Positions 1 to 55,657 of a stretch of DNA of 55,657 nucleotides are shown here, in pieces. The DNA is from Phaeosaccion multiseriatum (lineage: Eukaryota; Protista; Ochrophyta, other classes): assembly GCA_965112735.1 (NCBI GenBank), contig CBCOSG010000004.1, positions 1-55,657 on the forward strand, given 5' to 3'. The notes beneath the pieces are model-generated. The model was not told the origin of the DNA. It did no database searches and saw nothing but the letters and a program-made list of their open reading frames with translations. The position numbers and the translations under genes are program-made. Every line of letters begins with the position of its first letter. The stretch's first letter is position 1.

Positions 1-1651
1 TAAAAAGTTCCAAAATTTGGGCAGAATAATTTTTGTGTACATAATTTATTAAAGTATAAAAAATATTTTTTACATTAGAATCTAGGCTGATATTTGAAAT
101 TTCATTATTAGCCAATTTTTGTAATAATTTTTTAAATTGACTACGGGCTTTAAATTCAGGATTACCTCCTAATAATATATCCGTTCCTCGGCCTGCCATA
201 TTGGTCGAAATAGTTATGGAGTTCAAGCAACCTGCTTGTGCAATAATTTGTGATTCTAATTTAGTAGTTTCGGGTTTAGCATTTAAAAGTTGGTGTGGAA
301 TCTCATACGCGGCCAACAAAAAAGAAAATATCTCAGAATTTTCAATTGTTGTAGTTCCTACAAGAATTGGACGACCTGTTTTATGAATTTCTTTAACTTC
401 TAGACAGATAGCTTTCCATTTACTAAATTGATTAAAATAAATTAAATCTGATAGATCTTTCCGTATAATGGGTCTAAATGTTGGTAAGACGACAACAGCT
501 AAATTATAAGTATTTTCAAATTCAAGTTGCTCAGTTTTAGCTGTTCCAGTCATTCCTGACAATTTAGGATATAAGCGGAATAAATTTTGATATGTAATCG
601 ATGCTAAGGTTTTTGTCTTTTGTAAATTTGTTAATCCTTCTTTTGCTTCAATTGCTTGGTGTAAACCTTCTCCCCATTTTCGTCCTTCCATACTTCTTCC
701 AGTAAATTTATCTATAATAACAACTTCATTATTTTGAACTATATAATCAATATTACGAAGAAATAAGCATTTTGCTCTAATTGCATTTAATATGTAACCG
801 ATCCAAGGATCATTGGTAGTATAAAGATTATCAACTTTCAGTAAAACTTTACTTATATAAAATCCTAATTCTGTTAAACTCGCAGTTTTCGTTTTTTCAT
901 CAAGTTCAAAATGAAGGTTCTCTTTAAACCGTGTTATAAGTTGATCAGCTTTAAAAAATTTATCCAATCTAACTTTGGATAAGGTTGAAATAATTATAGG
1001 TGTTCTGGCTTCATCAATTAGTACTGAGTCAATTTCATCGATAATACAAAAATTGAACCGTCGTTGAGTAATCTCATTCGTTTCTGTTACTAAATTATCT
1101 CTTAGAAAATCAAATCCAATTTCTGTATTAGTAATGTAAGTAATATCACAAAGATAATTTTGTTTCCGTTCAGCTTGTGGCATATTCTCTTTAATTAAGC
1201 CAACCGTTAATCCTAAACATTGATAAATTTTTTGCATCCATTCCATATCCCGCTGTGCTAAATACTCATTTACTGTAATAATATGAACTCCTTCAGTAGA
1301 TAGAGCATTTGTAGCGGCTGGACAACTTGCAACCAAAGTTTTCCCTTCACCAGTTGCCATTTCAGCGATTTTTCCTTCATTAAGAATTAATCCACCAAGT
1401 AATTGAGTATCATAATGTCTTAAGCCTAAAGTTCGTTTAGATGCCTCACGAGTTAAAGCAAAAGTATTAGTAATAATTGAATTTGTAAGTTTGGCATTAT
1501 TTGTCGACATAGTATTTTTTAACAAACCAATCCTTTCCTTAATTTCACTTGGTAAAAGAGTACTAAATTCATTTTCTAGTGCATTAATATTTTGAATAAT
1601 GGGCCGGTAAGTATTCCATAGTTTTTTTTCAGTAGAAAAATGTTGAATCAT
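1..1651 (-). CDS. secA: SecA, 5' part (IR copy, runs off the window start)
   Basis: Reverse complement of 14328-15978; CAT at 1649-1651. Confidence 0.93.
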   Translation of the reverse strand, partial: MIQHFSTEKKLWNTYRPIIQNINALENEFSTLLPSEIKERIGLLKNTMSTNNAKLTNSIITNTFALTREASKRTLGLRHYDTQLLGGLILNEGKIAEMATGEGKTLVASCPAATNALSTEGVHIITVNEYLAQRDMEWMQKIYQCLGLTVGLIKENMPQAERKQNYLCDITYITNTEIGFDFLRDNLVTETNEITQRRFNFCIIDEIDSVLIDEARTPIIISTLSKVRLDKFFKADQLITRFKENLHFELDEKTKTASLTELGFYISKVLLKVDNLYTTNDPWIGYILNAIRAKCLFLRNIDYIVQNNEVVIIDKFTGRSMEGRKWGEGLHQAIEAKEGLTNLQKTKTLASITYQNLFRLYPKLSGMTGTAKTEQLEFENTYNLAVVVLPTFRPIIRKDLSDLIYFNQFSKWKAICLEVKEIHKTGRPILVGTTTIENSEIFSFLLAAYEIPHQLLNAKPETTKLESQIIAQAGCLNSITISTNMAGRGTDILLGGNPEFKARSQFKKLLQKLANNEISNISLDSNVKNIFYTLINYVHKNYSAQILELF

Positions 1652-1801
1652 ACTTGTAATTTTTTATAAATATAAAAAGAAAAAAAAAGACTTTCTAGTA
1701 ATTAAGTAAAGGAAATTAGTCAGAATCGTGAGTCATTTCTATAGATGTTAGTTTGAAAATTATAATAATAAATGTGAGAGGGGGTTTAGTACTCTTTTAA
1801 A

Positions 1802-2170
1802 TTAATAAATACAGTTATAAGCTAATGGACTTTTTAATTTCGATGAAGGACCAGTAAACTCACCTATTATTACATTATTAAATCTTAGTTTTAACCAAGT
1901 AACAAAATTTTTATTGGTAGAAACAAGAGCAATATTATTCGTTAAACATTCTTTTTTTATTGATTGCAGTTCGGGAAGTTCTAAAAATTGAGGACTTGGT
2001 AATAACCAGAAATCTAAACGTTTTTCAATTGAGCGATAATATTCTACCCGTTCCCGTAGTACTTCTTCAAAAGGTTCATGAATTAAAAGAAAATTTTGAC
2101 TCCCTAAAACAAAATAGTATTGACTTTCCATTTTCATAAATTTTAAATAATGCTTACTTATTATAAGCAT
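1802..2170 (-). CDS. ycf54: Ycf54 (Mg-protoporphyrin monomethyl ester cyclase partner)
   Basis: Motifs YYFVLGSQNFL, EPFEEVLRER, DFWL and FVTWLKLR. The true start may be the downstream Met (MESQ). Confidence 0.9.
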   Translation of the reverse strand: MLIISKHYLKFMKMESQYYFVLGSQNFLLIHEPFEEVLRERVEYYRSIEKRLDFWLLPSPQFLELPELQSIKKECLTNNIALVSTNKNFVTWLKLRFNNVIIGEFTGPSSKLKSPLAYNCIY

Positions 2171-2373
2171 TTTTAATCATATTTACCCATTTAATTTATC
2201 TTTTTCTTATTTATTTATTTTTAAGCTTAAACAAAAAATGATTATACTCTGGAGCCTAACTCAATAAAACTTAAAAAAGCAAGACATAGATTTAGTAAAT
2301 TTACTTATTTTATATGTACGGATTTATATTATTTATACTAATATGCAGAATGGTATTATTAAACGTATTAGAA

Positions 2374-2467
2374 ATTGAGTCGAGTTTGGTTAACCTAGTC
2401 CTTCTTTTAAAGTTTGATAAGTAAAAACGCAAATAGATACAATCTCCATATTTTTAATTATTACAAT
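2374..2467 (+). repeat. 94-bp dispersed repeat, also upstream of clpC
   Basis: Matches 34435-34528 with about 4 substitutions; IR copy at 13514-13607. Confidence 0.9.
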
Positions 2468-2496
2468 CAACATAAATAAAAAAATAAACGATATTT

Positions 2497-2601
2497 ATGA
2501 CAGCAAATTTAATAGCCATAGGAATTGGTATAGCAATTGGGATCTCACCATTACGGGATTCCGCATTCGCAAAATTTTTAATTCTCATTACAGGAGGTTA
2601 A
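2497..2601 (+). CDS. 34-aa hydrophobic peptide MTANLIAIGIGIAIGISPLRDSAFAKFLILITGG
   Basis: Manual translation. Aligns without gaps to a 34-aa paralog at 55074-55178. The terminal GGAGG is positioned as an SD for the ATG at 2607. Confidence 0.55.
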   Translation: MTANLIAIGIGIAIGISPLRDSAFAKFLILITGG

Positions 2602-2606
2602 AAATT

Positions 2607-2911
2607 ATGACAATGTTGCATATAATAGAAAGAGGCATGTAGTAAAAAAAGGCCTGCCTTATCTGTTTCCCATTGGAAGAACAGTAAAGATTGCGCAGAC
2701 GGGAATAAATGTGACAAATTCAACAAGTCCTGTAATATTAGCAAAAAATATTACAGTCACTGTTGTTGATTGTTGCTCACCACCACCTGTACGGTTAGCG
2801 GCGCATTGTATTGGAGCGGAGGCTATTATTGCAGCCTCGGTTGTAAATCCGAATCCAATTACATTTGGGTCCGCTATGCATATGCTCGCAGAAATTTATG
2901 AAAAATGTTAA
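2607..2911 (+). pseudogene. ~95-aa Cys-containing ORF, frameshifted near its 5' end
   Basis: The SD/ATG at 2607 is out of frame with the long open frame VVKKGLPYLFPIGRTVKIAQTGINVTNSTSPV...EIYEKC. Paralog at 55180-55440. Confidence 0.6.
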
Positions 2912-2954
2912 TTAACTTAAATTATATTAATTAATATTTTTCATAAATTTCTGC
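2888..2954. terminator. 28-bp-stem hairpin overlapping the ORF 3' end
   Basis: gcagaaatttatgaaaaatgttaattaa pairs with ttaattaatatttttcataaatttctgc (one G-T pair). Confidence 0.7.
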
Positions 2955-3363
2955 TAGATACTCTCAGGCGTACTGGTGCGGATCCCCCTGCCAGGCAAAA
3001 TTGTCTGCATCTCATCGCTAAAGGCTATTTCCTATGGGTGTATGAGCATAAGGGATCTATGCAATGCCCAACCTAAAAATCTATTATGTTAGATTCTAGG
3101 TTAGCATTTTCGCATTATGTTAGGCAGGTAATTAGAACTCTGCTATTTACACAAAGTTTAATCCTGTCTGCTTTTTTCGGCGTCATTACTCGTGTGTATT
3201 TAAACGGCACTATTGTGTAAATAAGTCTTGTAAATTAATACATTATTTAAAAATTCAATTTTTAAAAAATCATTAAAGCAAATAAATATAATAAATTTAT
3301 TTACTTTAATTTTATATATTAGGATTTTTTATATAGTTAGAGAGTTATTAATAGAAAAAATAG

Positions 3364-3435
3364 TCCTCAGTAGCTCAGTGGTAGAGCAATCGGCTGTTAA
3401 CCGATTGGTCGTAGGTTCAAATCCTACCTGGGGAG
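3364..3435 (+). tRNA. trnN: tRNA-Asn(GUU)
   Basis: Cloverleaf; anticodon loop CTGTTAA; GGTTCAAATCC T-arm. Confidence 0.95.
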
Positions 3436-3502
3436 TTTATAGAAATTATAATTTATTTATTAATGTTGTAGAATTTAGATAAATATTAATAAATAAATTT
3501 TC

Positions 3503-4309
3503 ATGGTTTTAACAAATAAATTAATAATTGGGAACAAAGCTTTTGATTCACGTTTAATGTTAGGGACTGGAAAATATAAAGATTTAAAAGAAACAAAAGA
3601 GAGTATTTTACAAAGTAAATGTGAGATTATTACAGTTGCAGTTCGTCGACTTGATTTACAAGGTATAGAAAAAAACTCAAATTTAATTAACTCTTTAAAT
3701 TGGGATAAATTATGGCTACTTCCAAATACTGCAGGGGCAAAAACTGCTGAAGAAGCTATTAGATTAGGATTTTTAGGGAGAGAGATTGCTAAAAAAATTG
3801 GTCAAGTGGATAATAATTTTGTGAAACTTGAAGTTATTTCTGATTCTAAATATTTATTACCTGATCCAATTGGGACTATTAAGGCAGCAAAATTTTTAAT
3901 CAAGAAAGGATTTACAGTTTTACCGTATATTAATGCTGACCCTATGTTGGCTCAACACTTGGAGGATATTGGTTGCTCTACTATTATGCCTTTAGGCTCA
4001 CCCATTGGTTCGGGACAAGGAATTAAAAATTTAACAAATATTAAAATTATTATCGAAAATGCCAGTATACCTGTTATAATTGATGCTGGAATAGGAAGCC
4101 CTAGTGAAGCTGCGCTAGCTATGGAGATTGGTGCTGATGGGGTACTAGTAAATACTTCAATAGCCAAATCTAATAACCCAACTCTAATGGCAAAAGCGAT
4201 GAAAAATGCAGTAAAGGCTGGGTACCAGGGTTATTTAGCTGGTTGTATTAAATCTGAACCTTTTGCACAAGCAAGTTCTCCTATTTATGGAAGTAGCTTT
4301 TTAAATTAA
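3503..4309 (+). CDS. thiG: Thiazole synthase ThiG
   Basis: Motifs [34 protein letters not shown] and DAGIG. Confidence 0.97.
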
Positions 4310-4385
4310 AAAAGAATATAGTACTTCTAGGATATTAAGTTATAAGATTTTACTTTTATATTCAAATAAATTCTGGAGATAAGAA

Positions 4386-4631
4386 ATGTCACATGGTGTA
4401 AAAATATACGATACTTGTATTGGATGCACTCAATGTGTTCGAGCTTGTCCAACCGATGTTTTAGAAATGGTGGAATGGGAAGGTTGTCGAGCATCACAAA
4501 TGGCTTCTGCACCACGGACAGAAGATTGTGTTGGTTGTAAGCGTTGTGAATCAGCTTGCCCTACTGATTTTTTAAGTATTCGAGTTTATTTAGGTGGAGA
4601 AACAACTCGTAGTATGGGCTTAGCTTATTAA
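4386..4631 (+). CDS. psaC: Photosystem I Fe-S subunit PsaC
   Basis: Two CxxCxxCxxxCP motifs; ends TRSMGLAY. Confidence 0.99.
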
Positions 4632-4722
4632 ATTTTTTTCATTAAAGTAAGAACATTCTTTCTTTATAGGATAATAGATAGCTATCATGATAATAGCTAA
4701 ATTCCAATCAATTAATTTATAA

Positions 4723-5646
4723 CTATAAAACCCAACCGTAACTATGTAATCCTTGTCCTAAAAAATTTACTCCTAGGTAACATACCCAAACTACAAAAAA
4801 ACCTAAAGCAGCCAATGCTGCAGGGGCTTCTCCAGTCCATCCTTTAATAATTCGAGCGTGTAAATACGCAGCAAAAATTAACCATGTGATTAAAGCCCAA
4901 GTTTCTTTTGGATCCCAACTCCAATATGAACCCCAAGCCTCGTTAGCCCAAACCGCTCCTGCAATAATGCCTATAGTTAGGCATGGAAAACCAAAACTGA
5001 TAATACGGTAACTTAAACTATCTAAATTAGTTAATAATTTCTTTTTAGAAGAATGCTCAGTAAAAGTAGAGGTTAAATACACTTCCGTAGCTTGAAGTAA
5101 ATTAGATTTTTTTAATGGAATTAATTTTACAGATTTTCTATTTAATTTCTTATTCCGTAAAATTAAAAATAAAATCGATAACAAAGAACCAGTTATTAAT
5201 GTTCCGTAACTTAACATCATTAAACTAACATGCATCATTAACCAATTTGATTGGAGTGCTGGGACTAAAGGGCTAGCTTTTTGCAGCTCTAATGGTAATG
5301 TAAAACTAGCAAAAGTATTAATTAATAATACAACGGGAAGAATAATTGCTCCAATTATTTTATTTTGAGCATTTTTCTCTAATACTATTTGTAAAAACAA
5401 TAAAATACATGATAAAAATATTAATGATTCATAAAGATTACTTAGGGGAAAATATCCATGAAGAACCCAACGACTTCCCAAAAAAATTGATAAAATGAGT
5501 GCAGCAATTTTTGAAGTAATATTTCCTAATCGGTATAGAGAATGAAAATTAGAAAAAACTAAATGAATCCAGTAAGATAACATTGCAGAGAATAAACAAA
5601 CGAAGCTTATATTTATAAATAAATTTTGGTAATTATCGAATAACAT
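4723..5646 (-). CDS. ccsA: Cytochrome c biogenesis protein CcsA
   Basis: WANEAWGSYWSWDPKETW tryptophan-rich motif. Confidence 0.98.
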   Translation of the reverse strand: MLFDNYQNLFINISFVCLFSAMLSYWIHLVFSNFHSLYRLGNITSKIAALILSIFLGSRWVLHGYFPLSNLYESLIFLSCILLFLQIVLEKNAQNKIIGAIILPVVLLINTFASFTLPLELQKASPLVPALQSNWLMMHVSLMMLSYGTLITGSLLSILFLILRNKKLNRKSVKLIPLKKSNLLQATEVYLTSTFTEHSSKKKLLTNLDSLSYRIISFGFPCLTIGIIAGAVWANEAWGSYWSWDPKETWALITWLIFAAYLHARIIKGWTGEAPAALAALGFFVVWVCYLGVNFLGQGLHSYGWVL

Positions 5647-6121
5647 ATGTACAAATTTTATTAATTACTATATTCTATATTATATCATATAATGTACACT
5701 ATAGTAATTAGTAGAAAAAAATAATATGTCTTACGAAAATAAAAAACTAATTACAATATTGCAACAAGGGTTAAAAATTCGAGAAAATATAAAATATAAT
5801 TATTACCTGATCACTGCAAACGGAGGACTGGGACGAATAATTTATAAAGAATAAAAAAAACTGTATCGAATTAAATACATTCTGTATAATCAGTCAAATT
5901 TAATAGCTTTTGGGAAGTTCTACTTAATAAGTTTAAATTGAGCTGGATCTAAACAACAAACTTATCAATATGTTTTAAATAAAAAGGAAAGGTAAGAGAA
6001 AATGAAAAGACTTTGTGATTAGACAAATAAACTCACTTTATAATTTAAACTATGGACAATATAAGGCTTTTAGTATTATTATATATAGGGGAATTTTAGA
6101 TTTATCAACAGAGTTTTTCTT

Positions 6122-6436
6122 ATGAAATATGCTATCATTGAAGCTAGTGGGAAACAATTTTGGGCCGAATCTGGTAGGTTTATTGAATTAAACCACATAC
6201 AACAAGAATCTGGAACCCAACTTTTATTTAACCGAATTTTATTTGCCCGAAATCACGACTCTGTATTTATTGGACAGCCTTATCTAGAGAAAATAAAAAT
6301 AGAAGCAGTGGTAGATAGCAATATTTTAGGTCCAAAAATTATGGTTTATAAAATGAAACCGAAAAAAAAATACAGAAAAAAAATTGGTTATCGTCAAAAA
6401 TTAACACGAATATTTATTGAAACAATTATATATTAA
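6122..6436 (+). CDS. rpl21: Ribosomal protein L21
   Basis: Motifs MKYAIIEASGKQF and KMKPKKKYRKKIGYRQ. Confidence 0.97.
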   Translation: MKYAIIEASGKQFWAESGRFIELNHIQQESGTQLLFNRILFARNHDSVFIGQPYLEKIKIEAVVDSNILGPKIMVYKMKPKKKYRKKIGYRQKLTRIFIETIIY

Positions 6437-6447
6437 AAAAAAACAAT

Positions 6448-6694
6448 ATGGCACATAAAAAAAGGAGCCGGTAGTACAAAAAACGGCCGTGATTCAAAAT
6501 CTAAACGTTTAGGGGTAAAATGTTACCAAAACCATAAAGTAAAAATTGGGAATATTTTAGTAAGACAAAGAGGTTTAACTATTAAACCTGGCCAAAATAT
6601 TGGTGTTGGCAAAGATTTTACATTATATGCTTTAAAAGCAGGTGTAACGATGTACCGAAAAACAAAAACAAAAACTTTAATCTATATTTTATAA
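6448..6694 (+). CDS. rpl27: Ribosomal protein L27 (extra A in a homopolymer at codon 5-6)
   Basis: Reads [24 protein letters not shown]...GNILVRQRG after removing one A; the other IR copy has the correct 6-A run. Confidence 0.9.
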
Positions 6695-9291: not shown

Positions 9292-9534
9292 TTATAAAAT
9301 AAACATTAAAGTTTTTGTTTTAATTTTTCGGTACATCCTTACACCTTCTTTTAAAGCTTATAATGTAAAATCTTTGCCAACACCTATTTTTTTGCCGACG
9401 TTTCTTAATTATACCTTTTTGTCCGGTTTTTGTTCCCAATTTTTGCACGGAAACCTGGAAACATTTTACCCCTAAACGTTTAGATTTTGATCACGGCCGT
9501 TTTTTGTACTACCGGCTCCTTTTTTATGTGCCAT
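9292..9534 (-). CDS. rpl27: Ribosomal protein L27 (IR copy, garbled 3' half)
   Basis: Intact [14 protein letters not shown] start, followed by indels. Confidence 0.8.
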
Positions 9535-9545
9535 ATTGTTTTTTT

Positions 9546-9860
9546 TTAATATATAATTGTTTCAATAAATATTCGTGTTAATTTTTGACGATAACCAATT
9601 TTTTTTCTGTATTTTTTTTTCGGTTTCATTTTATAAACCATAATTTTTGGACCTAAAATATTGCTATCTACCACTGCTTCTATTTTTATTTTCTCTAGAT
9701 AAGGCTGTCCAATAAATACAGAGTCGTGATTTCGGGCAAATAAAATTCGGTTAAATAAAAGTTGGGTTCCAGATTCTTGTTGTATGTGGTTTAATTCAAT
9801 AAACCTACCAGATTCGGCCCAAAATTGTTTCCCACTAGCTTCAATGATAGCATATTTCAT
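9546..9860 (-). CDS. rpl21: Ribosomal protein L21 (IR copy)
   Basis: Translation identical to 6122-6436. Confidence 0.97.
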   Translation of the reverse strand: MKYAIIEASGKQFWAESGRFIELNHIQQESGTQLLFNRILFARNHDSVFIGQPYLEKIKIEAVVDSNILGPKIMVYKMKPKKKYRKKIGYRQKLTRIFIETIIY

Positions 9861-34558: not shown

Positions 34559-37536
34559 ATGTTTGATAATTTTAGTGAAGCAACTGTTAGAACTCTCATG
34601 CTGGCACAAACAGAAGGTCGGATAATGAGGGCTGACAAAATAGGTACTGAACATTACCTCATAGGAATTATGGGAGAATCAAAAGGAATGGTGGCAGGAA
34701 TATTAAGAGAAGAGTATGGAGTAGTTCTAAAAGAAATTAGAGTAATGTCCGCGTCATTATTCTTTTCAACATCCAAATTTACAGCGATACATTTGCCTTT
34801 TAGTGTAAGAATGAAATATATCTTTGATAATGCAAAGATTTATGCCGAATACTTTCAACAGAGTTCTATAAACCCGGAACACTTGGTCCTTGCAATGTTA
34901 GCACAAGGACACGGCAATGGTTTAGATCTATTAGAAGCAATGGATGTTGATATTTTTAACTTTTCTAACCAACTTCAAGATGCTACAGCGGAAATGGGGA
35001 TTCAGGAAGTATATTATAAACTGAAGTACGAATATGAAATGCGGGGTGAAATAGCCGATTTTGATCTTCGTGAAAAAATTATACGACCTCCAAATAAAAT
35101 TTTTAAGAGAGCACTGGAATATAAAGAAAAAAAGAAAGAGAAATAAGAGAAAAAATTAGAAAATTAGAAGAAGAAATAGGACGAAAAACAACAATAAAAG
35201 ATCCCGTGGGTGGCGATGAGGATGAGGATGATGATGAATTTGATATATTTTCACTTAGCTTTAATGATAAATATGCATTACGTAAAAATACCTTAAAACA
35301 ATTTACCACAAATTTAACAGAAAAGGCAGAAAATGAAGATGAAGTAATGGATCCAGTTATTGGGAGACGACGAGAAATTTACCGAGTAATGCAAATTTTA
35401 ACACGTCGCCGAAAAAATAATCCAATTCTTTTAGGAGAGGCAGGTGTTGGTAAAACAGCAGTTTCTGAAGGATTAGCACAATCGATTGCAAGTAAAAAAG
35501 CTCCTACAAACCTAGCAGAAAAACAAGTTATTTTACTAAATCTTACCCAGCTTTTAGCTGGCACTAAATACAGAGGAGAATTTGAAGAAAGATTACGACG
35601 TATTATCGATGAAATTACATCGTCACAACTTTATCTTTTAGTTATTGATGAAATTCATACTTTAGTTGGAGCAGGAAATTCTGAGGGCGCTTTAGATGCA
35701 GCAAATATTTTAAAACCTCCCTTAGCGAGAGGTACATTACAATGTATTGGTGCCACAACTCCAAGTGAATATAAACAATCTATCGAAAGAGATTTAGCTT
35801 TAGAACGTCGTTTTCAAGCAGTAACAGTAGCGGAGCCTACTTTAGAAGAAACTATTTTAATATTAGCTGGACTTAGAAAAGATTATGAGGCTTATCATCA
35901 AGTACATATTTCGAATAAGGCTCTTGCTTCTTCAGCCAAATTAAGTGCGCAGTATGTTGCAGATAGATCATTGCCTGATAAAGCAATTGATTTAATGGAT
36001 GAAGCATGTGCAAGAGTTAGAATAAATAACTCAATTCTGCCAAAAGAAATTTATGCTATAGAAATGGATTTGCAACTGGTTTTAGAAAAAAAAATTGAAT
36101 GTATGCGTTTTCAAGATTTTGAAACGGCTATAAAATATAGAAATTATGAAATGAAACTTAGAGAACGAATTTGTGGCCTAGTTGAAGTTCATCAATACGA
36201 TAAAAAAATTGAAAAAATGGTTTCGAAAAGACCCTCGGTTGGAGAAGGTGATGTAGCAAAAATTGTTGCTACTTGGACTGGGATTCCTGTTAATAAAGTT
36301 ACCGAAGACGAAAGAAAAAAATTAATAATGCTAGAACAAATTTTGGGAAAAGAAGTTATTGGCCAAGAAAGAGCTGTTAAAGCAATTTCAAAAGCAATTC
36401 GGAGAGCCCGAACTGGATTACAAAGTACAAATCGACCAATTGCAAGTTTTTTATTTTCCGGACCTACCGGTGTGGGAAAAACAGAATTAACAAAAACTTT
36501 AGCAAGACATTATTTTGGTTCTGAAGATTCTATGGTTAGAATAGATATGTCTGAATATATGGAAAAACATACGGTAGCTAAATTAATTGGTGCTCCTCCT
36601 GGCTATATTGGTTATGGTGAAGGAGGTCAATTAACAGAAGCTGTTAGACGTAGACCATACTCTTTAATACTATTAGATGAAGTTGAAAAAGGTCATCCAG
36701 ATGTATTTAATTTATTACTGCAAATCTTAGAAGATGGTCGTTTAACAGATGCTAAAGGATTATTAGTTAATTTTAAAAACACGATTATTATCCTGACATC
36801 AAATTTAGGCTCATCAGCTATCCAAAAAATGATTGAAAAAGGTCAACTTCAATTCAGATCTGATGGTACAATGGATGATAAAATTTACAAAAAACTATGT
36901 GATACTGTTAACCGAGAATTATTAACATTTTTTAGACCGGAATTTATAAATAGACTCGATGAAACTATTGTTTTTAGACCATTAGCCGAAGGAGATTTAT
37001 TAAAAATTACCCGGATTTTACTTCGACAACTAAATAAAAGACTACAATCCAGTAAAATGGAATTAAAAATAAGTAGTGCTGCAATTGAATTAATAATGCA
37101 TGAAGGATATGAGCCAGCATTTGGTGCCCGACCACTTAGACGAGCTATAACAAGATTATTAGAAGATGAGATTGCAACTTTATATCTAGCTTATTCGAAT
37201 AAAAAAGACAGAGTAAAAGAAGTAGACGATACTCAAGTAAAAGAGCCCGTTACCGACACTAAATATCTAACATACAACCCTGATACAAATATTAGCCCAC
37301 GAAGAGCAAAGGCACGAGCTGAACGACGTAAAGCTCGCTACAAAAAGAAAAAAGAAAGTACAGAAGAAGAAAGATTGAAAGAGAGAAAAAAGAAGAGAAG
37401 ATTAGAAAAAGAACAGGAAATGAAAAAAAGAATTGGCCATAGAGTTATTGTTGACGTAGGCGAAAATAAAACATTAGCAATTAAATTAGAAAAAGAAGAT
37501 CTACCTCTAAACGAAGATAAATTTGAATATCTATAA
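34559..37536 (+). CDS. clpC: ClpC chaperone, split by a -1 frame change at ~35126-35134
   Basis: ORF 34559-35146 holds the Clp N-domain (MFDNFSE, IGTEHYLIG, INPEHLVLA). ORF 35206-37536 holds both AAA modules (GEAGVGKT, GPTGVGKT, RIDMSEY, FGARPLRR). The second frame is open from 35125. Confidence 0.93.
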
Positions 37537-54444: not shown

Positions 54445-54723
54445 GGGGGCGTGGCGGAATGGTAGACGCAACGGACTTATTAACTTGAGCCATTAAAAAA
54501 TTATTTTTTAAGGTAAGTTCTCAAATTCAAGAAATTAAACTCTTTTTATTTGAAGACAAAAAATCTTGAGCCAAAAAATATTTTGCTGAAAAAATATATA
54601 GGTGCAGAGACTCGACGGGAACTACTCATTATAGGTAAAGAAAGAGTCCAATTTAGATAATTATTCTAATTGAAAATCCGTTGTCTAAATATAGACGTGG
54701 GGGTTCAAGTCCCCCCGCCCCCA
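54445..54723 (+). tRNA. trnL: tRNA-Leu(UAA), exons 54445-54478 and 54673-54723
   Basis: Exon 1 ends ...ACGGACTT and exon 2 begins AAAATCCG; joining them restores the UAA anticodon. Confidence 0.93.
54479..54672 (+). other. Group I intron in trnL(UAA)
   Basis: P (AAATTCAAGAAA), Q (AATCTTGAGC), R (GTGCAGAGACTCGACGGG) and S (AAGAAAGAGTCC) elements; terminal G. Confidence 0.92.
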
Positions 54724-55073
54724 AGAAACAAAATCCAAGATACATTAATTATAATAAAATAAAATTATAATATAAAAGTTATAAAACATAAACAAATTTA
54801 CATATAGATACGCAGATTTTAGAGTTTAGTCTATTTGTACATTAGGGTTAGTAAAAATGGATTGAATATTTATGTTTAGAAGTCTGAAAATATCTTCTGA
54901 GAGGTGTATATAAGCGCCTGACGGGATTCTGAAAGATCAGATAAGATTGTATTCTCTTTAATTAAAAGTTGGTCTTAAAATAGGTTTATTATATGGTATT
55001 GAGAAATAAGTAAGATTATATTGCAGACACACATTATATTTTGTTATTCTATAACCTAAAAAACTATTACATT

Positions 55074-55178
55074 ATGTACACGCTTATTTCTATAGCGGTT
55101 GGTATAACATCATCCTGCTCATCGTTAAAACATTCTACCATAATAAACTATATTGTACTCACTACGGGAGGAGGCTAA
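55074..55178 (+). CDS. 34-aa peptide MYTLISIAVGITSSCSSLKHSTIINYIVLTTGGG
   Basis: Paralog of 2497-2601; GGAGGAGG precedes the ATG at 55180. Confidence 0.55.
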   Translation: MYTLISIAVGITSSCSSLKHSTIINYIVLTTGGG

Positions 55179-55179
55179 T

Positions 55180-55440
55180 ATGACACCTATGATTATCAAA
55201 ACAATACTCCCTGGAAGTAGGGGATTTACGTTGTTTAAACGGGGAGTACAAGTATAACCCAGTCATGGTTACAAAAAATATAACTCTGACTGTGCTGGAT
55301 TATTGTTCACCTCTCCAATGAGATTAGTGGTGCATTGTGTTGCCGCAAGTGCAAGTATTATGGCTTCGATCATAAGTCCGAATCCCACAACAATCGGTTG
55401 CGCTTGTCATTTGATTACAGAACTATACAACAATTGCTAA
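55180..55440 (+). pseudogene. Cys-containing ORF paralog with two frame breaks
   Basis: MTPMIIKTILPGSRGFTLFKRGVQV / NPVMVTKNITLTVLDYCSP / PMRLVVHCVAASASIMASIISPNPTTIGCACHLITELYNNC. Confidence 0.65.
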
Positions 55441-55612
55441 CTAAAAAAAAACTAATTTCTTTGAATTAGAAAGTTGGTAAAAATAGTTTTTTGGATTAAA
55501 ATATCCTATTACTAATGTAATGGATATTTTGTGTGATTCCATTTTCTATAGAAGTCCATTAATCAGCCAGTATAATTTTCATCTATTATTAATACTTTTT
55601 TTGAATAGCTAA

Positions 55613-55652
55613 AAAAAAGTATCTACCATTAAAAAAGTATCTACCATTAAAA
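55613..55652. repeat. 18-bp tandem duplication
   Basis: aaaaaagtatctaccatt occurs twice. Confidence 0.8.
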
Positions 55653-55657
55653 ATTAA

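Follow-up and report, generated by a model that had tools for sequence, protein, structure and literature searches.

The two loci described here, at each of which a short ORF is followed closely by a longer one, are in all probability decaying relics of circular plastid plasmids of the pCf1/pCf2 type that were integrated into the plastid genome. As a gene family, the pair is real and conserved; it is common in marine samples and has seemingly gone unannotated. Judging from the reading frames, the large gene is broken in all three copies found here, and in this genome the unit has ceased to function as a pair. The copies are plasmid-integration relics, not plastid genes. The region is ordinary in kind, and the gene pair appears to be an overlooked, conserved part of such plasmids.

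The window, by which we mean the whole stretch of 55,657 nt that was analyzed, is the entire contig C20 of the plastid genome. The assembly contains four or five overlapping plastid contigs (C18-C22), and C18 (108,425 bp) looks like the full plastid circle. Within the window we identified the plastid genes ycf54, thiG, psaC, ccsA, rpl21, secA, psbC/psbD, acsF, petN and petM, together with the rRNA operon and a split clpC. Inverted-repeat arms lie at 1-6462 and 9520-15978, and the repeat extends at least to 19192. Given that the first locus (copy A) lies in the inverted repeat, every feature of it has an identical minus-strand twin in the other arm. The plastid genome thus contains three copies of the gene pair (copy A, its twin and copy B) at two loci (Table 1).

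Table 1. Features at and around the two gene-pair loci (window coordinates unless a locus is named)
Feature	Position	Strand	Basis
94-nt duplicate of the region upstream of the split clpC (34435-34528), 96% identical	2374-2467	+	repeat search
Copy A small ORF, 34 aa, open	2497-2601	+	ORF list, family alignment
Copy A large ORF, pseudogene	2607-2911	+	frame reading and family alignment
Imperfect 17-nt tandem duplication, frame-shifting	2619-2652	+	units 2619-2635 and 2636-2652, 13/17 identical
Near-perfect palindrome, about 30 bp per arm	2885-2957	.	fold: hairpin dG -32 kcal/mol, z -9.75
C-terminal remnant, comprising the last 46 residues, of a Cys-rich family of roughly 135-150 aa	2952-3089	+	family comparison
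Twin of the Cys-rich fragment, other inverted-repeat arm	12892-13029	-	inverted-repeat twin
Copy A twin, identical, other inverted-repeat arm	13070-13484	-	inverted-repeat comparison
Non-coding DNA preceding copy B, with about 71% identity to the DNA ahead of the pair in plasmid-type L008/L009	54818-54893	+	alignment
Copy B small ORF, 34 aa, open but diverged	55074-55178	+	ORF list, family alignment
Copy B large ORF, pseudogene	55180-55440	+	frame reading, tree
Fragment of the roughly 500-aa plasmid ORF, residues 220-253	55518-55619	-	family comparison
GGWCCGATWTTT motif positions	L018:2657-2714, L034:1497-1555, L064:766-823, L008:851-908		motif search

Both of the 34-aa ORFs noted in a first-pass annotation of this DNA, which had overlooked the inverted-repeat twin, are present. 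The copy A peptide retains all of the residues conserved in the family (G-I-G, SPLRDS and ITGG), and the copy B peptide is 36% identical to the family and has SSLK in place of the conserved SPLR. Both peptides end in Thr-Gly-Gly(-Gly), and the terminal glycine codons form a GGAGG ahead of the next ATG in both copies, as that annotation had stated. In copy A, it lies at 2593-2597 within the last codons of the small ORF and the ATG at 2607 follows 9 nt on; in copy B, the corresponding region is GGGAGGAGG at 55166-55174 and the ATG at 55180 follows 5 nt on, and the canonical layout (GGAGG, stop, 1 nt, ATG) is intact. The two peptides had been said to align without gaps. This is correct only when one is offset by one residue, in which case 30 residues align gap-free with a score of 62 against 19.5 +/- 4.0 in 5000 shuffles (z 10.7); in the same register the score is -14, with 4/34 identities, and is no better than that of shuffles. 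The second ORFs also align as described: against shuffles, the 41 C-terminal residues reach z 18.8 and a 19-residue piece from the middle reaches z 11.9. They had been taken to represent a cysteine-containing ORF of about 95 aa, and the conserved sequence is indeed there, but the ORF is intact in neither copy.

The large ORF of copy A has ATG codons at 2607 and 2613 in one frame, which meets a TAG at 2640, and its conserved part is open in another frame (2582-2911), where the earliest start is a GTG at 2711. The 91 conserved residues span 2636-2908 and include every residue that is invariant in the family. Dropping either unit of the 17-nt duplication restores a 93-aa reading that is colinear with the family. 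The large ORF of copy B contains a TAA at 55255 and changes frame near 55247-55257 and 55312-55318, leaving the pieces 55180-55254, 55247-55318 and 55312-55437. The terminal branches of the copies in a maximum-likelihood tree are long, at 0.72 for copy A and 1.23 for copy B against a median of 0.14.

The two copies of the 94-nt repeat each end exactly 30 nt before a start codon, that of the copy A small ORF in one case and that of the N-terminal clpC piece in the other; copying may have occurred in either direction. The best sigma-70-like site of the region lies in this repeat (TTGATA, 18 nt, TACAAT; 2414-2443) and may act as a promoter, and promoter-like sites are no more frequent than in shuffled sequences. 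With its residues conserved and a host upstream region duplicated in front of it, the copy A small ORF could still be expressed and useful alone. The sequencing runs that matched the copy A stretch included no RNA runs, and matching contigs cannot reveal transcripts. The clpC of the window is in two pieces, a 195-aa Clp_N piece and a 776-aa piece (34559-35146 and 35206-37536); in plastid contigs among the environmental loci described below, clpC is undivided (794-933 aa). On the other side of copy A, the palindrome takes in the last eight codons of the large ORF and is followed by the Cys-rich fragment. The Cys-rich family, which has no Pfam match, also adjoins the gene pair in L001, L005 and L007. 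Homology between this neighbor and the large product was considered and ruled out, as profile comparison detected none.

Copy B preserves more of its plasmid context. The fragment of the roughly 500-aa ORF downstream is convergent with the pair, which is the arrangement seen in the circular plasmids. Residues 1-219 of the same ORF lie together with a serine-recombinase pseudogene at C18:96386-97432, 8.6 kb from copy B (C18:106041-106462 corresponds to 55198-55619 of the window). The recombinase (serC) pseudogene at C18:96386-97033 is in line with the copy B plasmid remnant, and the two halves are separated at residue 219/220 of the ORF by a block containing ilvB, rpl19, four tRNAs, psbB and cbbX. 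The plasmid-type layout at copy B and the position of the remainder in C18 indicate that a whole plasmid was inserted and was later split by rearrangement, and by this layout a rearrangement breakpoint lies within plasmid-derived DNA at copy B. A further pseudogene of the roughly 500-aa ORF is found at C18:84763-86063 (C21:18845-20145); it covers residues 3-443, contains many stops and has no adjoining pair. The plastome contains at least two overlapping pseudogenes of this ORF (C18:84763-86063, and C18:97023-97432 plus 106041-106181). The assembly yielded no intact plasmid genes and no free plasmid contigs or circles. Contig C20 itself terminates inside a plasmid-derived fragment, and its final 22 bases (55636-55657), which lie within a short tandem repeat, differ from C18 at the equivalent position. 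An intron-containing trnL probably lies some 350 nt before copy B: 54469-54669 matches a group I intron at E 9e-10, slightly below the Rfam gathering score, and a tRNA 3' end comes after it at about 54700-54725. ARAGORN made no call for this tRNA.

Relatives of the pair are numerous in environmental data. A word search returned 26 proteins, mostly of 93 aa, with E-values down to 1e-33 and 53-71% identity, none of which has a name or Pfam family. A scan of metagenome contigs gave 47 loci, and when profiles were searched exhaustively, 147 clusters (50% identity) were obtained. At about 55 environmental loci, an intact ORF of 31-38 aa lies 1-9 nt upstream of an ORF of 87-99 aa, the commonest spacer being 1 nt. 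The first-pass annotation had asked whether the small ORF is consistently upstream; it is, wherever the large ORF is intact and the sequence reaches far enough upstream, and in all of these cases a GGAGG lies within its last codons. Even in the distant member L068 a small ORF is found upstream, with stop and start overlapping. The small product has a mean hydropathy of 1.1, a hydrophobic core of about 15 residues, a glycine-zipper-like G-x-G-x-x-x-G, an SPLR(N/D)S turn and a C-terminal I-T-G-G. The large product has a conserved Cys-Cys-x-Pro-Pro-Pro motif, a further conserved Cys and a conserved C-terminal Cys. The purifying selection that had been proposed from the two window copies is evident in the family: the dN/dS, calculated by the pairwise Nei-Gojobori method over the 91 pairs formed by 14 distinct gene pairs, was 0.21 for the small ORF (0.20 when the three Shine-Dalgarno codons were removed) and 0.15 for the large ORF.

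In its working form, the pair would consist of two genes on one message, the small one first and the large one second. The last codons of the first gene spell a Shine-Dalgarno sequence for the second gene, whose start usually lies 1 nt past the stop. A Shine-Dalgarno sequence inside the first gene together with the usual 1-nt gap implies that translation of the second gene would be coupled to that of the first. We also considered a programmed +1 frameshift or read-through that would fuse the two ORFs. We rejected it because the spacer varies (1, 3, 4, 5 or 9 nt) and because L005 has two in-frame stops. A natural in-frame fusion, P0027 (L066/L067), is a weak case, as it depends on a run of seven G and is without a start codon. 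In addition, the profile search yielded P0051 (513 aa), a predicted protein in which a degenerate unit similar to the middle part of the large product occurs as seven tandem repeats; it may stem from read-through along a small element present as a concatemer or tandem array. The remaining long profile matches with multiple stretches were chance similarities to InlB B-repeats.

It had been suggested that the small peptide stays intact while the larger ORF decays. In copies A and B the small ORFs are indeed open and the large ones broken, but the argument built on this carries no special weight: the small ORF is shorter by a factor of 2.7, the reverse is seen at other loci, and the copy B peptide has lost SPLR. 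Accordingly, we do not take a small ORF that outlives the large one as a sign of toxin loss; the loci are in varied states. In L021, L029 and L048-L050 the large ORF is broken and the small one open, both ORFs are degenerate in L027, L042/L043, L038 and L051, and an intact large ORF follows an N-terminally cut small ORF at three loci (L012, L022/23 and L032/33).

We clustered all ORFs of the loci to find recurrent neighbors. A protein of roughly 219 aa with Resolvase (E 1.9e-29) and HTH_7 domains occurs in nine loci, and an ORF of 497-500 aa without a family match adjoins this recombinase gene (serC) in 18 loci. The other recurrent neighbors are the Cys-rich family mentioned above and a family of roughly 150 aa. 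The ends of loci L018 and L034 overlap directly by 123 and 111 nt, so these contigs close into circles of roughly 3.15 kb that contain only the recombinase, the roughly 500-aa ORF and the gene pair; L047 is a rotation of the same element. Pairs integrated in plastid contexts lie next to psbA, thiG, clpC, secA or psbD, often with degraded plasmid genes adjoining. The first-pass annotation had proposed a translationally coupled module from a plasmid-like mobile element, which agrees well with the recurrent pairing at 1-9 nt, the linkage to plasmid genes and the circles. It had also recognized no standard plastid gene in the pair. The lack of a Pfam family, the varying positions, the frequent decay and the plasmid-gene linkage bear this out, and in a check against core plastid genes (psb/pet/psa/ycf) no named family and no conserved position was found.

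The pair is not restricted to one backbone. In L016 (585-1508), L065 (1911-2831) and L024 (9886-10810), a gene convergent with the pair encodes a protein of 307 aa that bears Rep-like motifs of the rolling-circle kind and a Walker A site and has no Pfam match at E 0.01. This gene is a pseudogene in the plastid contig L024, and L016 and L065 are small contigs. The pair variants linked to it form the only well-supported clade (99/97) in the tree. Since the pair also occurs on this second, unrelated backbone, its association is not limited to a single plasmid type.

Directly behind the large ORF we found the motif GGWCCGATWTTT in 19 loci. The circular elements carry three copies (+, -, +) within about 60 nt and the integrated loci carry single copies; in L005, the motif stands on both sides of the pair (4496-4507 and 4999-5039). 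In the smallest plasmids, a repeated GGACCGAT-type motif follows the pair immediately. The GGWCCGATWTTT motif is absent from the window, whose copies have lost it. It resembles the res sites of resolvase-type serine recombinases and, in its position behind an ORF, the recombination site of integron gene cassettes, and it is possibly a recombinase site.

The gene content described above is close to that of known diatom plasmids. In pCf1 and pCf2 of Cylindrotheca fusiformis, the ORF217/218 recombinase lies next to ORF482/484 (PMC2873285), and Haslea silbo has serC-bearing plasmids (pHSC1-3 and pHSM1-3), of which pHSC1, at 3534 bp, was described with serC and orf480 only (PMC8070900). These plasmids share with the elements studied here a small circular form (3-4.5 kb in the published cases and roughly 3.15 kb in the environmental ones), a serine recombinase of roughly 217-221 aa beside an ORF of 480-515 aa, and repeated integration into the plastid genome followed by decay to pseudogenes and fragments. 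Pennate diatoms, the dinotom Kryptoperidinium and raphidophytes have been reported to carry integrated remnants in their plastid genomes (PMC2873285, PMC8070900, PMC3971590, PMC9235467). The first-pass annotation had pointed to similar ORFs in diatom plastomes and plasmids, and since the linked gene set matches the published content of pCf1/pCf2 and of the Haslea plasmids, this proved to be a good lead. From size, synteny and the published description, we infer that the roughly 500-aa ORF belongs to the ORF482/484 family. However, the annotation of the published plasmids comprises only the recombinase and ORFs above about 100 aa, and the 35-aa and 93-aa pair is not mentioned in PMC2873285, PMC8070900 or PMC3971590 (a survey with a 100-aa cut-off). 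We predict that the published pCf1, pCf2 and Haslea plasmids carry it.

If the two loci are plasmid relics, the question arises of how often a plasmid was acquired. The first-pass annotation had proposed at least two acquisitions, which the different plasmid-derived neighbors and the overlapping pseudogenes favor; the proposal is unproven, as the maximum-likelihood tree does not separate copies A and B with support. We consider two separate acquisitions likely, because the flanks differ (a Cys-rich fragment at A; a fragment of the roughly 500-aa ORF and plasmid-like upstream DNA at B) and because the two pseudogenes of the roughly 500-aa ORF in the plastome overlap. Both facts count against the alternative that A and B arose from a single integration by internal duplication within the plastid genome, as does the identity of copy A to environmental sequences (up to 64-66%), to which it is closer than to copy B. 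Plastid genomes do move segments, as seen in the 94-nt clpC repeat and in the 8.6-kb block that splits the plasmid, and the lack of tree support for separating A from B would be in keeping with a single integration; nevertheless, we regard it as rather unlikely. It is very improbable that the frame break of copy A is an assembly error and that the large gene is intact in the living alga. Long-read assemblies can contain small indels, and the conserved residues of copy A are all intact. However, the break is a 17-nt insertion and not a homopolymer slip, it is present in four contigs of the assembly, and the same break occurs in contigs from the independent runs X5 and X6, which belong to two other studies and match 2414-2783 and 2478-2628 without a single difference. 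The match across the duplication in these contigs shows that it is no assembly slip.

A different possibility is that plasmids merely spread the pair as cargo of use to the plastid, such as a small complex in the thylakoid or envelope membrane, and that the copy A peptide is still used through the captured clpC upstream region. Within plastid genomes, intact pairs do persist beside degraded plasmid backbone (L005, L024 and L010), every conserved residue is retained in the copy A peptide behind its 96%-identical clpC upstream copy, and the size and hydrophobicity of the peptide are like those of low-molecular-weight photosystem subunits. On the other hand, the only photosystem match, to PsaK in the PDB profiles, has an E-value of 2.3 over 10 residues, the insertion sites vary among the five plastid genes named above, decay is frequent (L021, L027, L029, L042 and L048-L051), and none of the three copies here has an unbroken large gene. 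A smaller target size alone would account for the pair outlasting a 1.5-kb ORF. We therefore consider plastid cargo improbable. That the conserved entity is a DNA or RNA element, such as an origin, a recombination site or a structured RNA, in which the ORFs are incidental, is extremely improbable, even though a conserved repeated motif directly follows the large ORF and the small ORF is constrained in its last three codons by their role as a Shine-Dalgarno sequence. The synonymous differences greatly exceed the non-synonymous ones in both ORFs (pS 0.52-0.57 versus pN 0.17), which already contradicts this idea; frames, lengths and stop positions are constant across 40-98% identity, and Rfam matches were limited to spurious hairpins. 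The dN/dS values indicate that both ORFs are coding and constrained, and a purely DNA-level element is thereby excluded. Integrated plasmid relics remain the reading that we prefer for both loci.

Next, we asked what the pair may do. A Pfam scan of both products and their neighbors found nothing except the resolvase, PADLOC has no family for either product, and PDB sequence profiles gave nothing below E 0.3 for either. A first AlphaFold2 run on the large product with 34 close sequences was unusable (pLDDT 54). With 50 diverse sequences, four helices were predicted (2-29, 34-49, 54-72 and 76-92; pLDDT 79, pTM 0.61), with the other four models at 61-67. The large product is thus predicted to be a generic four-helix protein. 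Foldseek on the PDB, an exhaustive VIA search and the Atlas returned only generic helical matches; the best structural Z of 7.0 and the Z of 4.9 for an immunity protein are both within the chance range for helical proteins. A search of the ESM Atlas by features found only unnamed diatom clusters. The complex prediction for the small and large products, made without alignments, scored 0.00 and carries no weight either way.

The layout of the pair is reminiscent of toxin and bacteriocin operons (class II bacteriocins of the leaderless or two-peptide type; type I toxins, for instance Hok and Fst). Like these, it includes a peptide of about 35 aa, hydrophobic and with a stretch resembling a glycine zipper, and is carried on very small plasmids and on unrelated replicons. 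As in bacteriocin/immunity operons, a helical protein of roughly 90 aa is encoded directly downstream and, as predicted here, is co-translated; the immunity partner of class II bacteriocins is a four-helix bundle of roughly 90-110 aa encoded in the same place. The small product also falls within the size range of type I toxins (hydrophobic peptides under 60 aa). Type II toxin-antitoxin systems do not fit, as the upstream product is a 35-aa hydrophobic peptide and not a DNA-binding antitoxin, and Pfam, PADLOC and the PDB profiles (to E 0.3) gave no family or known toxin fold for the pair. A toxin/antitoxin-like pair, one reading offered in the first-pass annotation, is speculative. The resemblance is, however, one of layout, with no sequence similarity or significant structural similarity, and in contrast to such operons, we saw no antisense RNA and no export or processing genes. 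No promoter or terminator signal on the antisense strand at the pair was above chance. To our knowledge, no system of the toxin or bacteriocin type has been described for plastids.

In the smallest plasmids, the pair is the only content besides a replicase-sized ORF and the resolvase. By analogy with minimal bacterial plasmids, it might therefore serve the plasmid itself, through stable inheritance or addiction, for example with a membrane-active peptide and a protective helical partner. Of the roles considered, we hold this one the most likely, although it is still more doubtful than not, the main alternative being a membrane role that serves the host. It is unlikely, in our estimation, that the pair is a self-contained, portable plasmid-stability module of peptide and protective partner that has been moved among replicons and plastid genomes by site-specific recombination at the GGACCGAT-type motif. 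If true, this would be the first addiction- or cassette-type system described for a plasmid of algal organelles.

Foreign DNA in the plastid genomes of diatoms and raphidophytes is already known, and its content beyond the recombinases is largely anonymous. ORFs under 100 aa are disregarded in most surveys. The pair of 35 aa and 93 aa emerges here as the third constant component of the smallest such plasmids. Annotators thereby gain a marker of plasmid-derived islands, and experimenters a small, defined candidate for whatever retains plasmids in plastids. The proper annotation of the present region is plasmid-derived pseudogenes rather than new plastid genes. How surprising such relics are depends on the identity of the host: plasmids of this type are known only among pennate diatoms (PMC8070900), and plasmid-derived ORFs have been reported in raphidophytes and haptophytes (PMC9235467).

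We also searched prokaryotic and viral collections. Bacterial plasmids (PLSDB) and viral contigs (IMG/VR) contained no relative of the pair. Among GTDB genomes, two short contigs in Bacteroidota MAGs carry the pair together with plasmid genes: L064 (4999 bp), from a Eudoraea MAG, has the plasmid recombinase and the roughly 500-aa ORF, and L065 (3351 bp), from a Saprospiraceae MAG, has the Rep-like gene. Both are probably algal plastid-plasmid DNA that was mis-binned.
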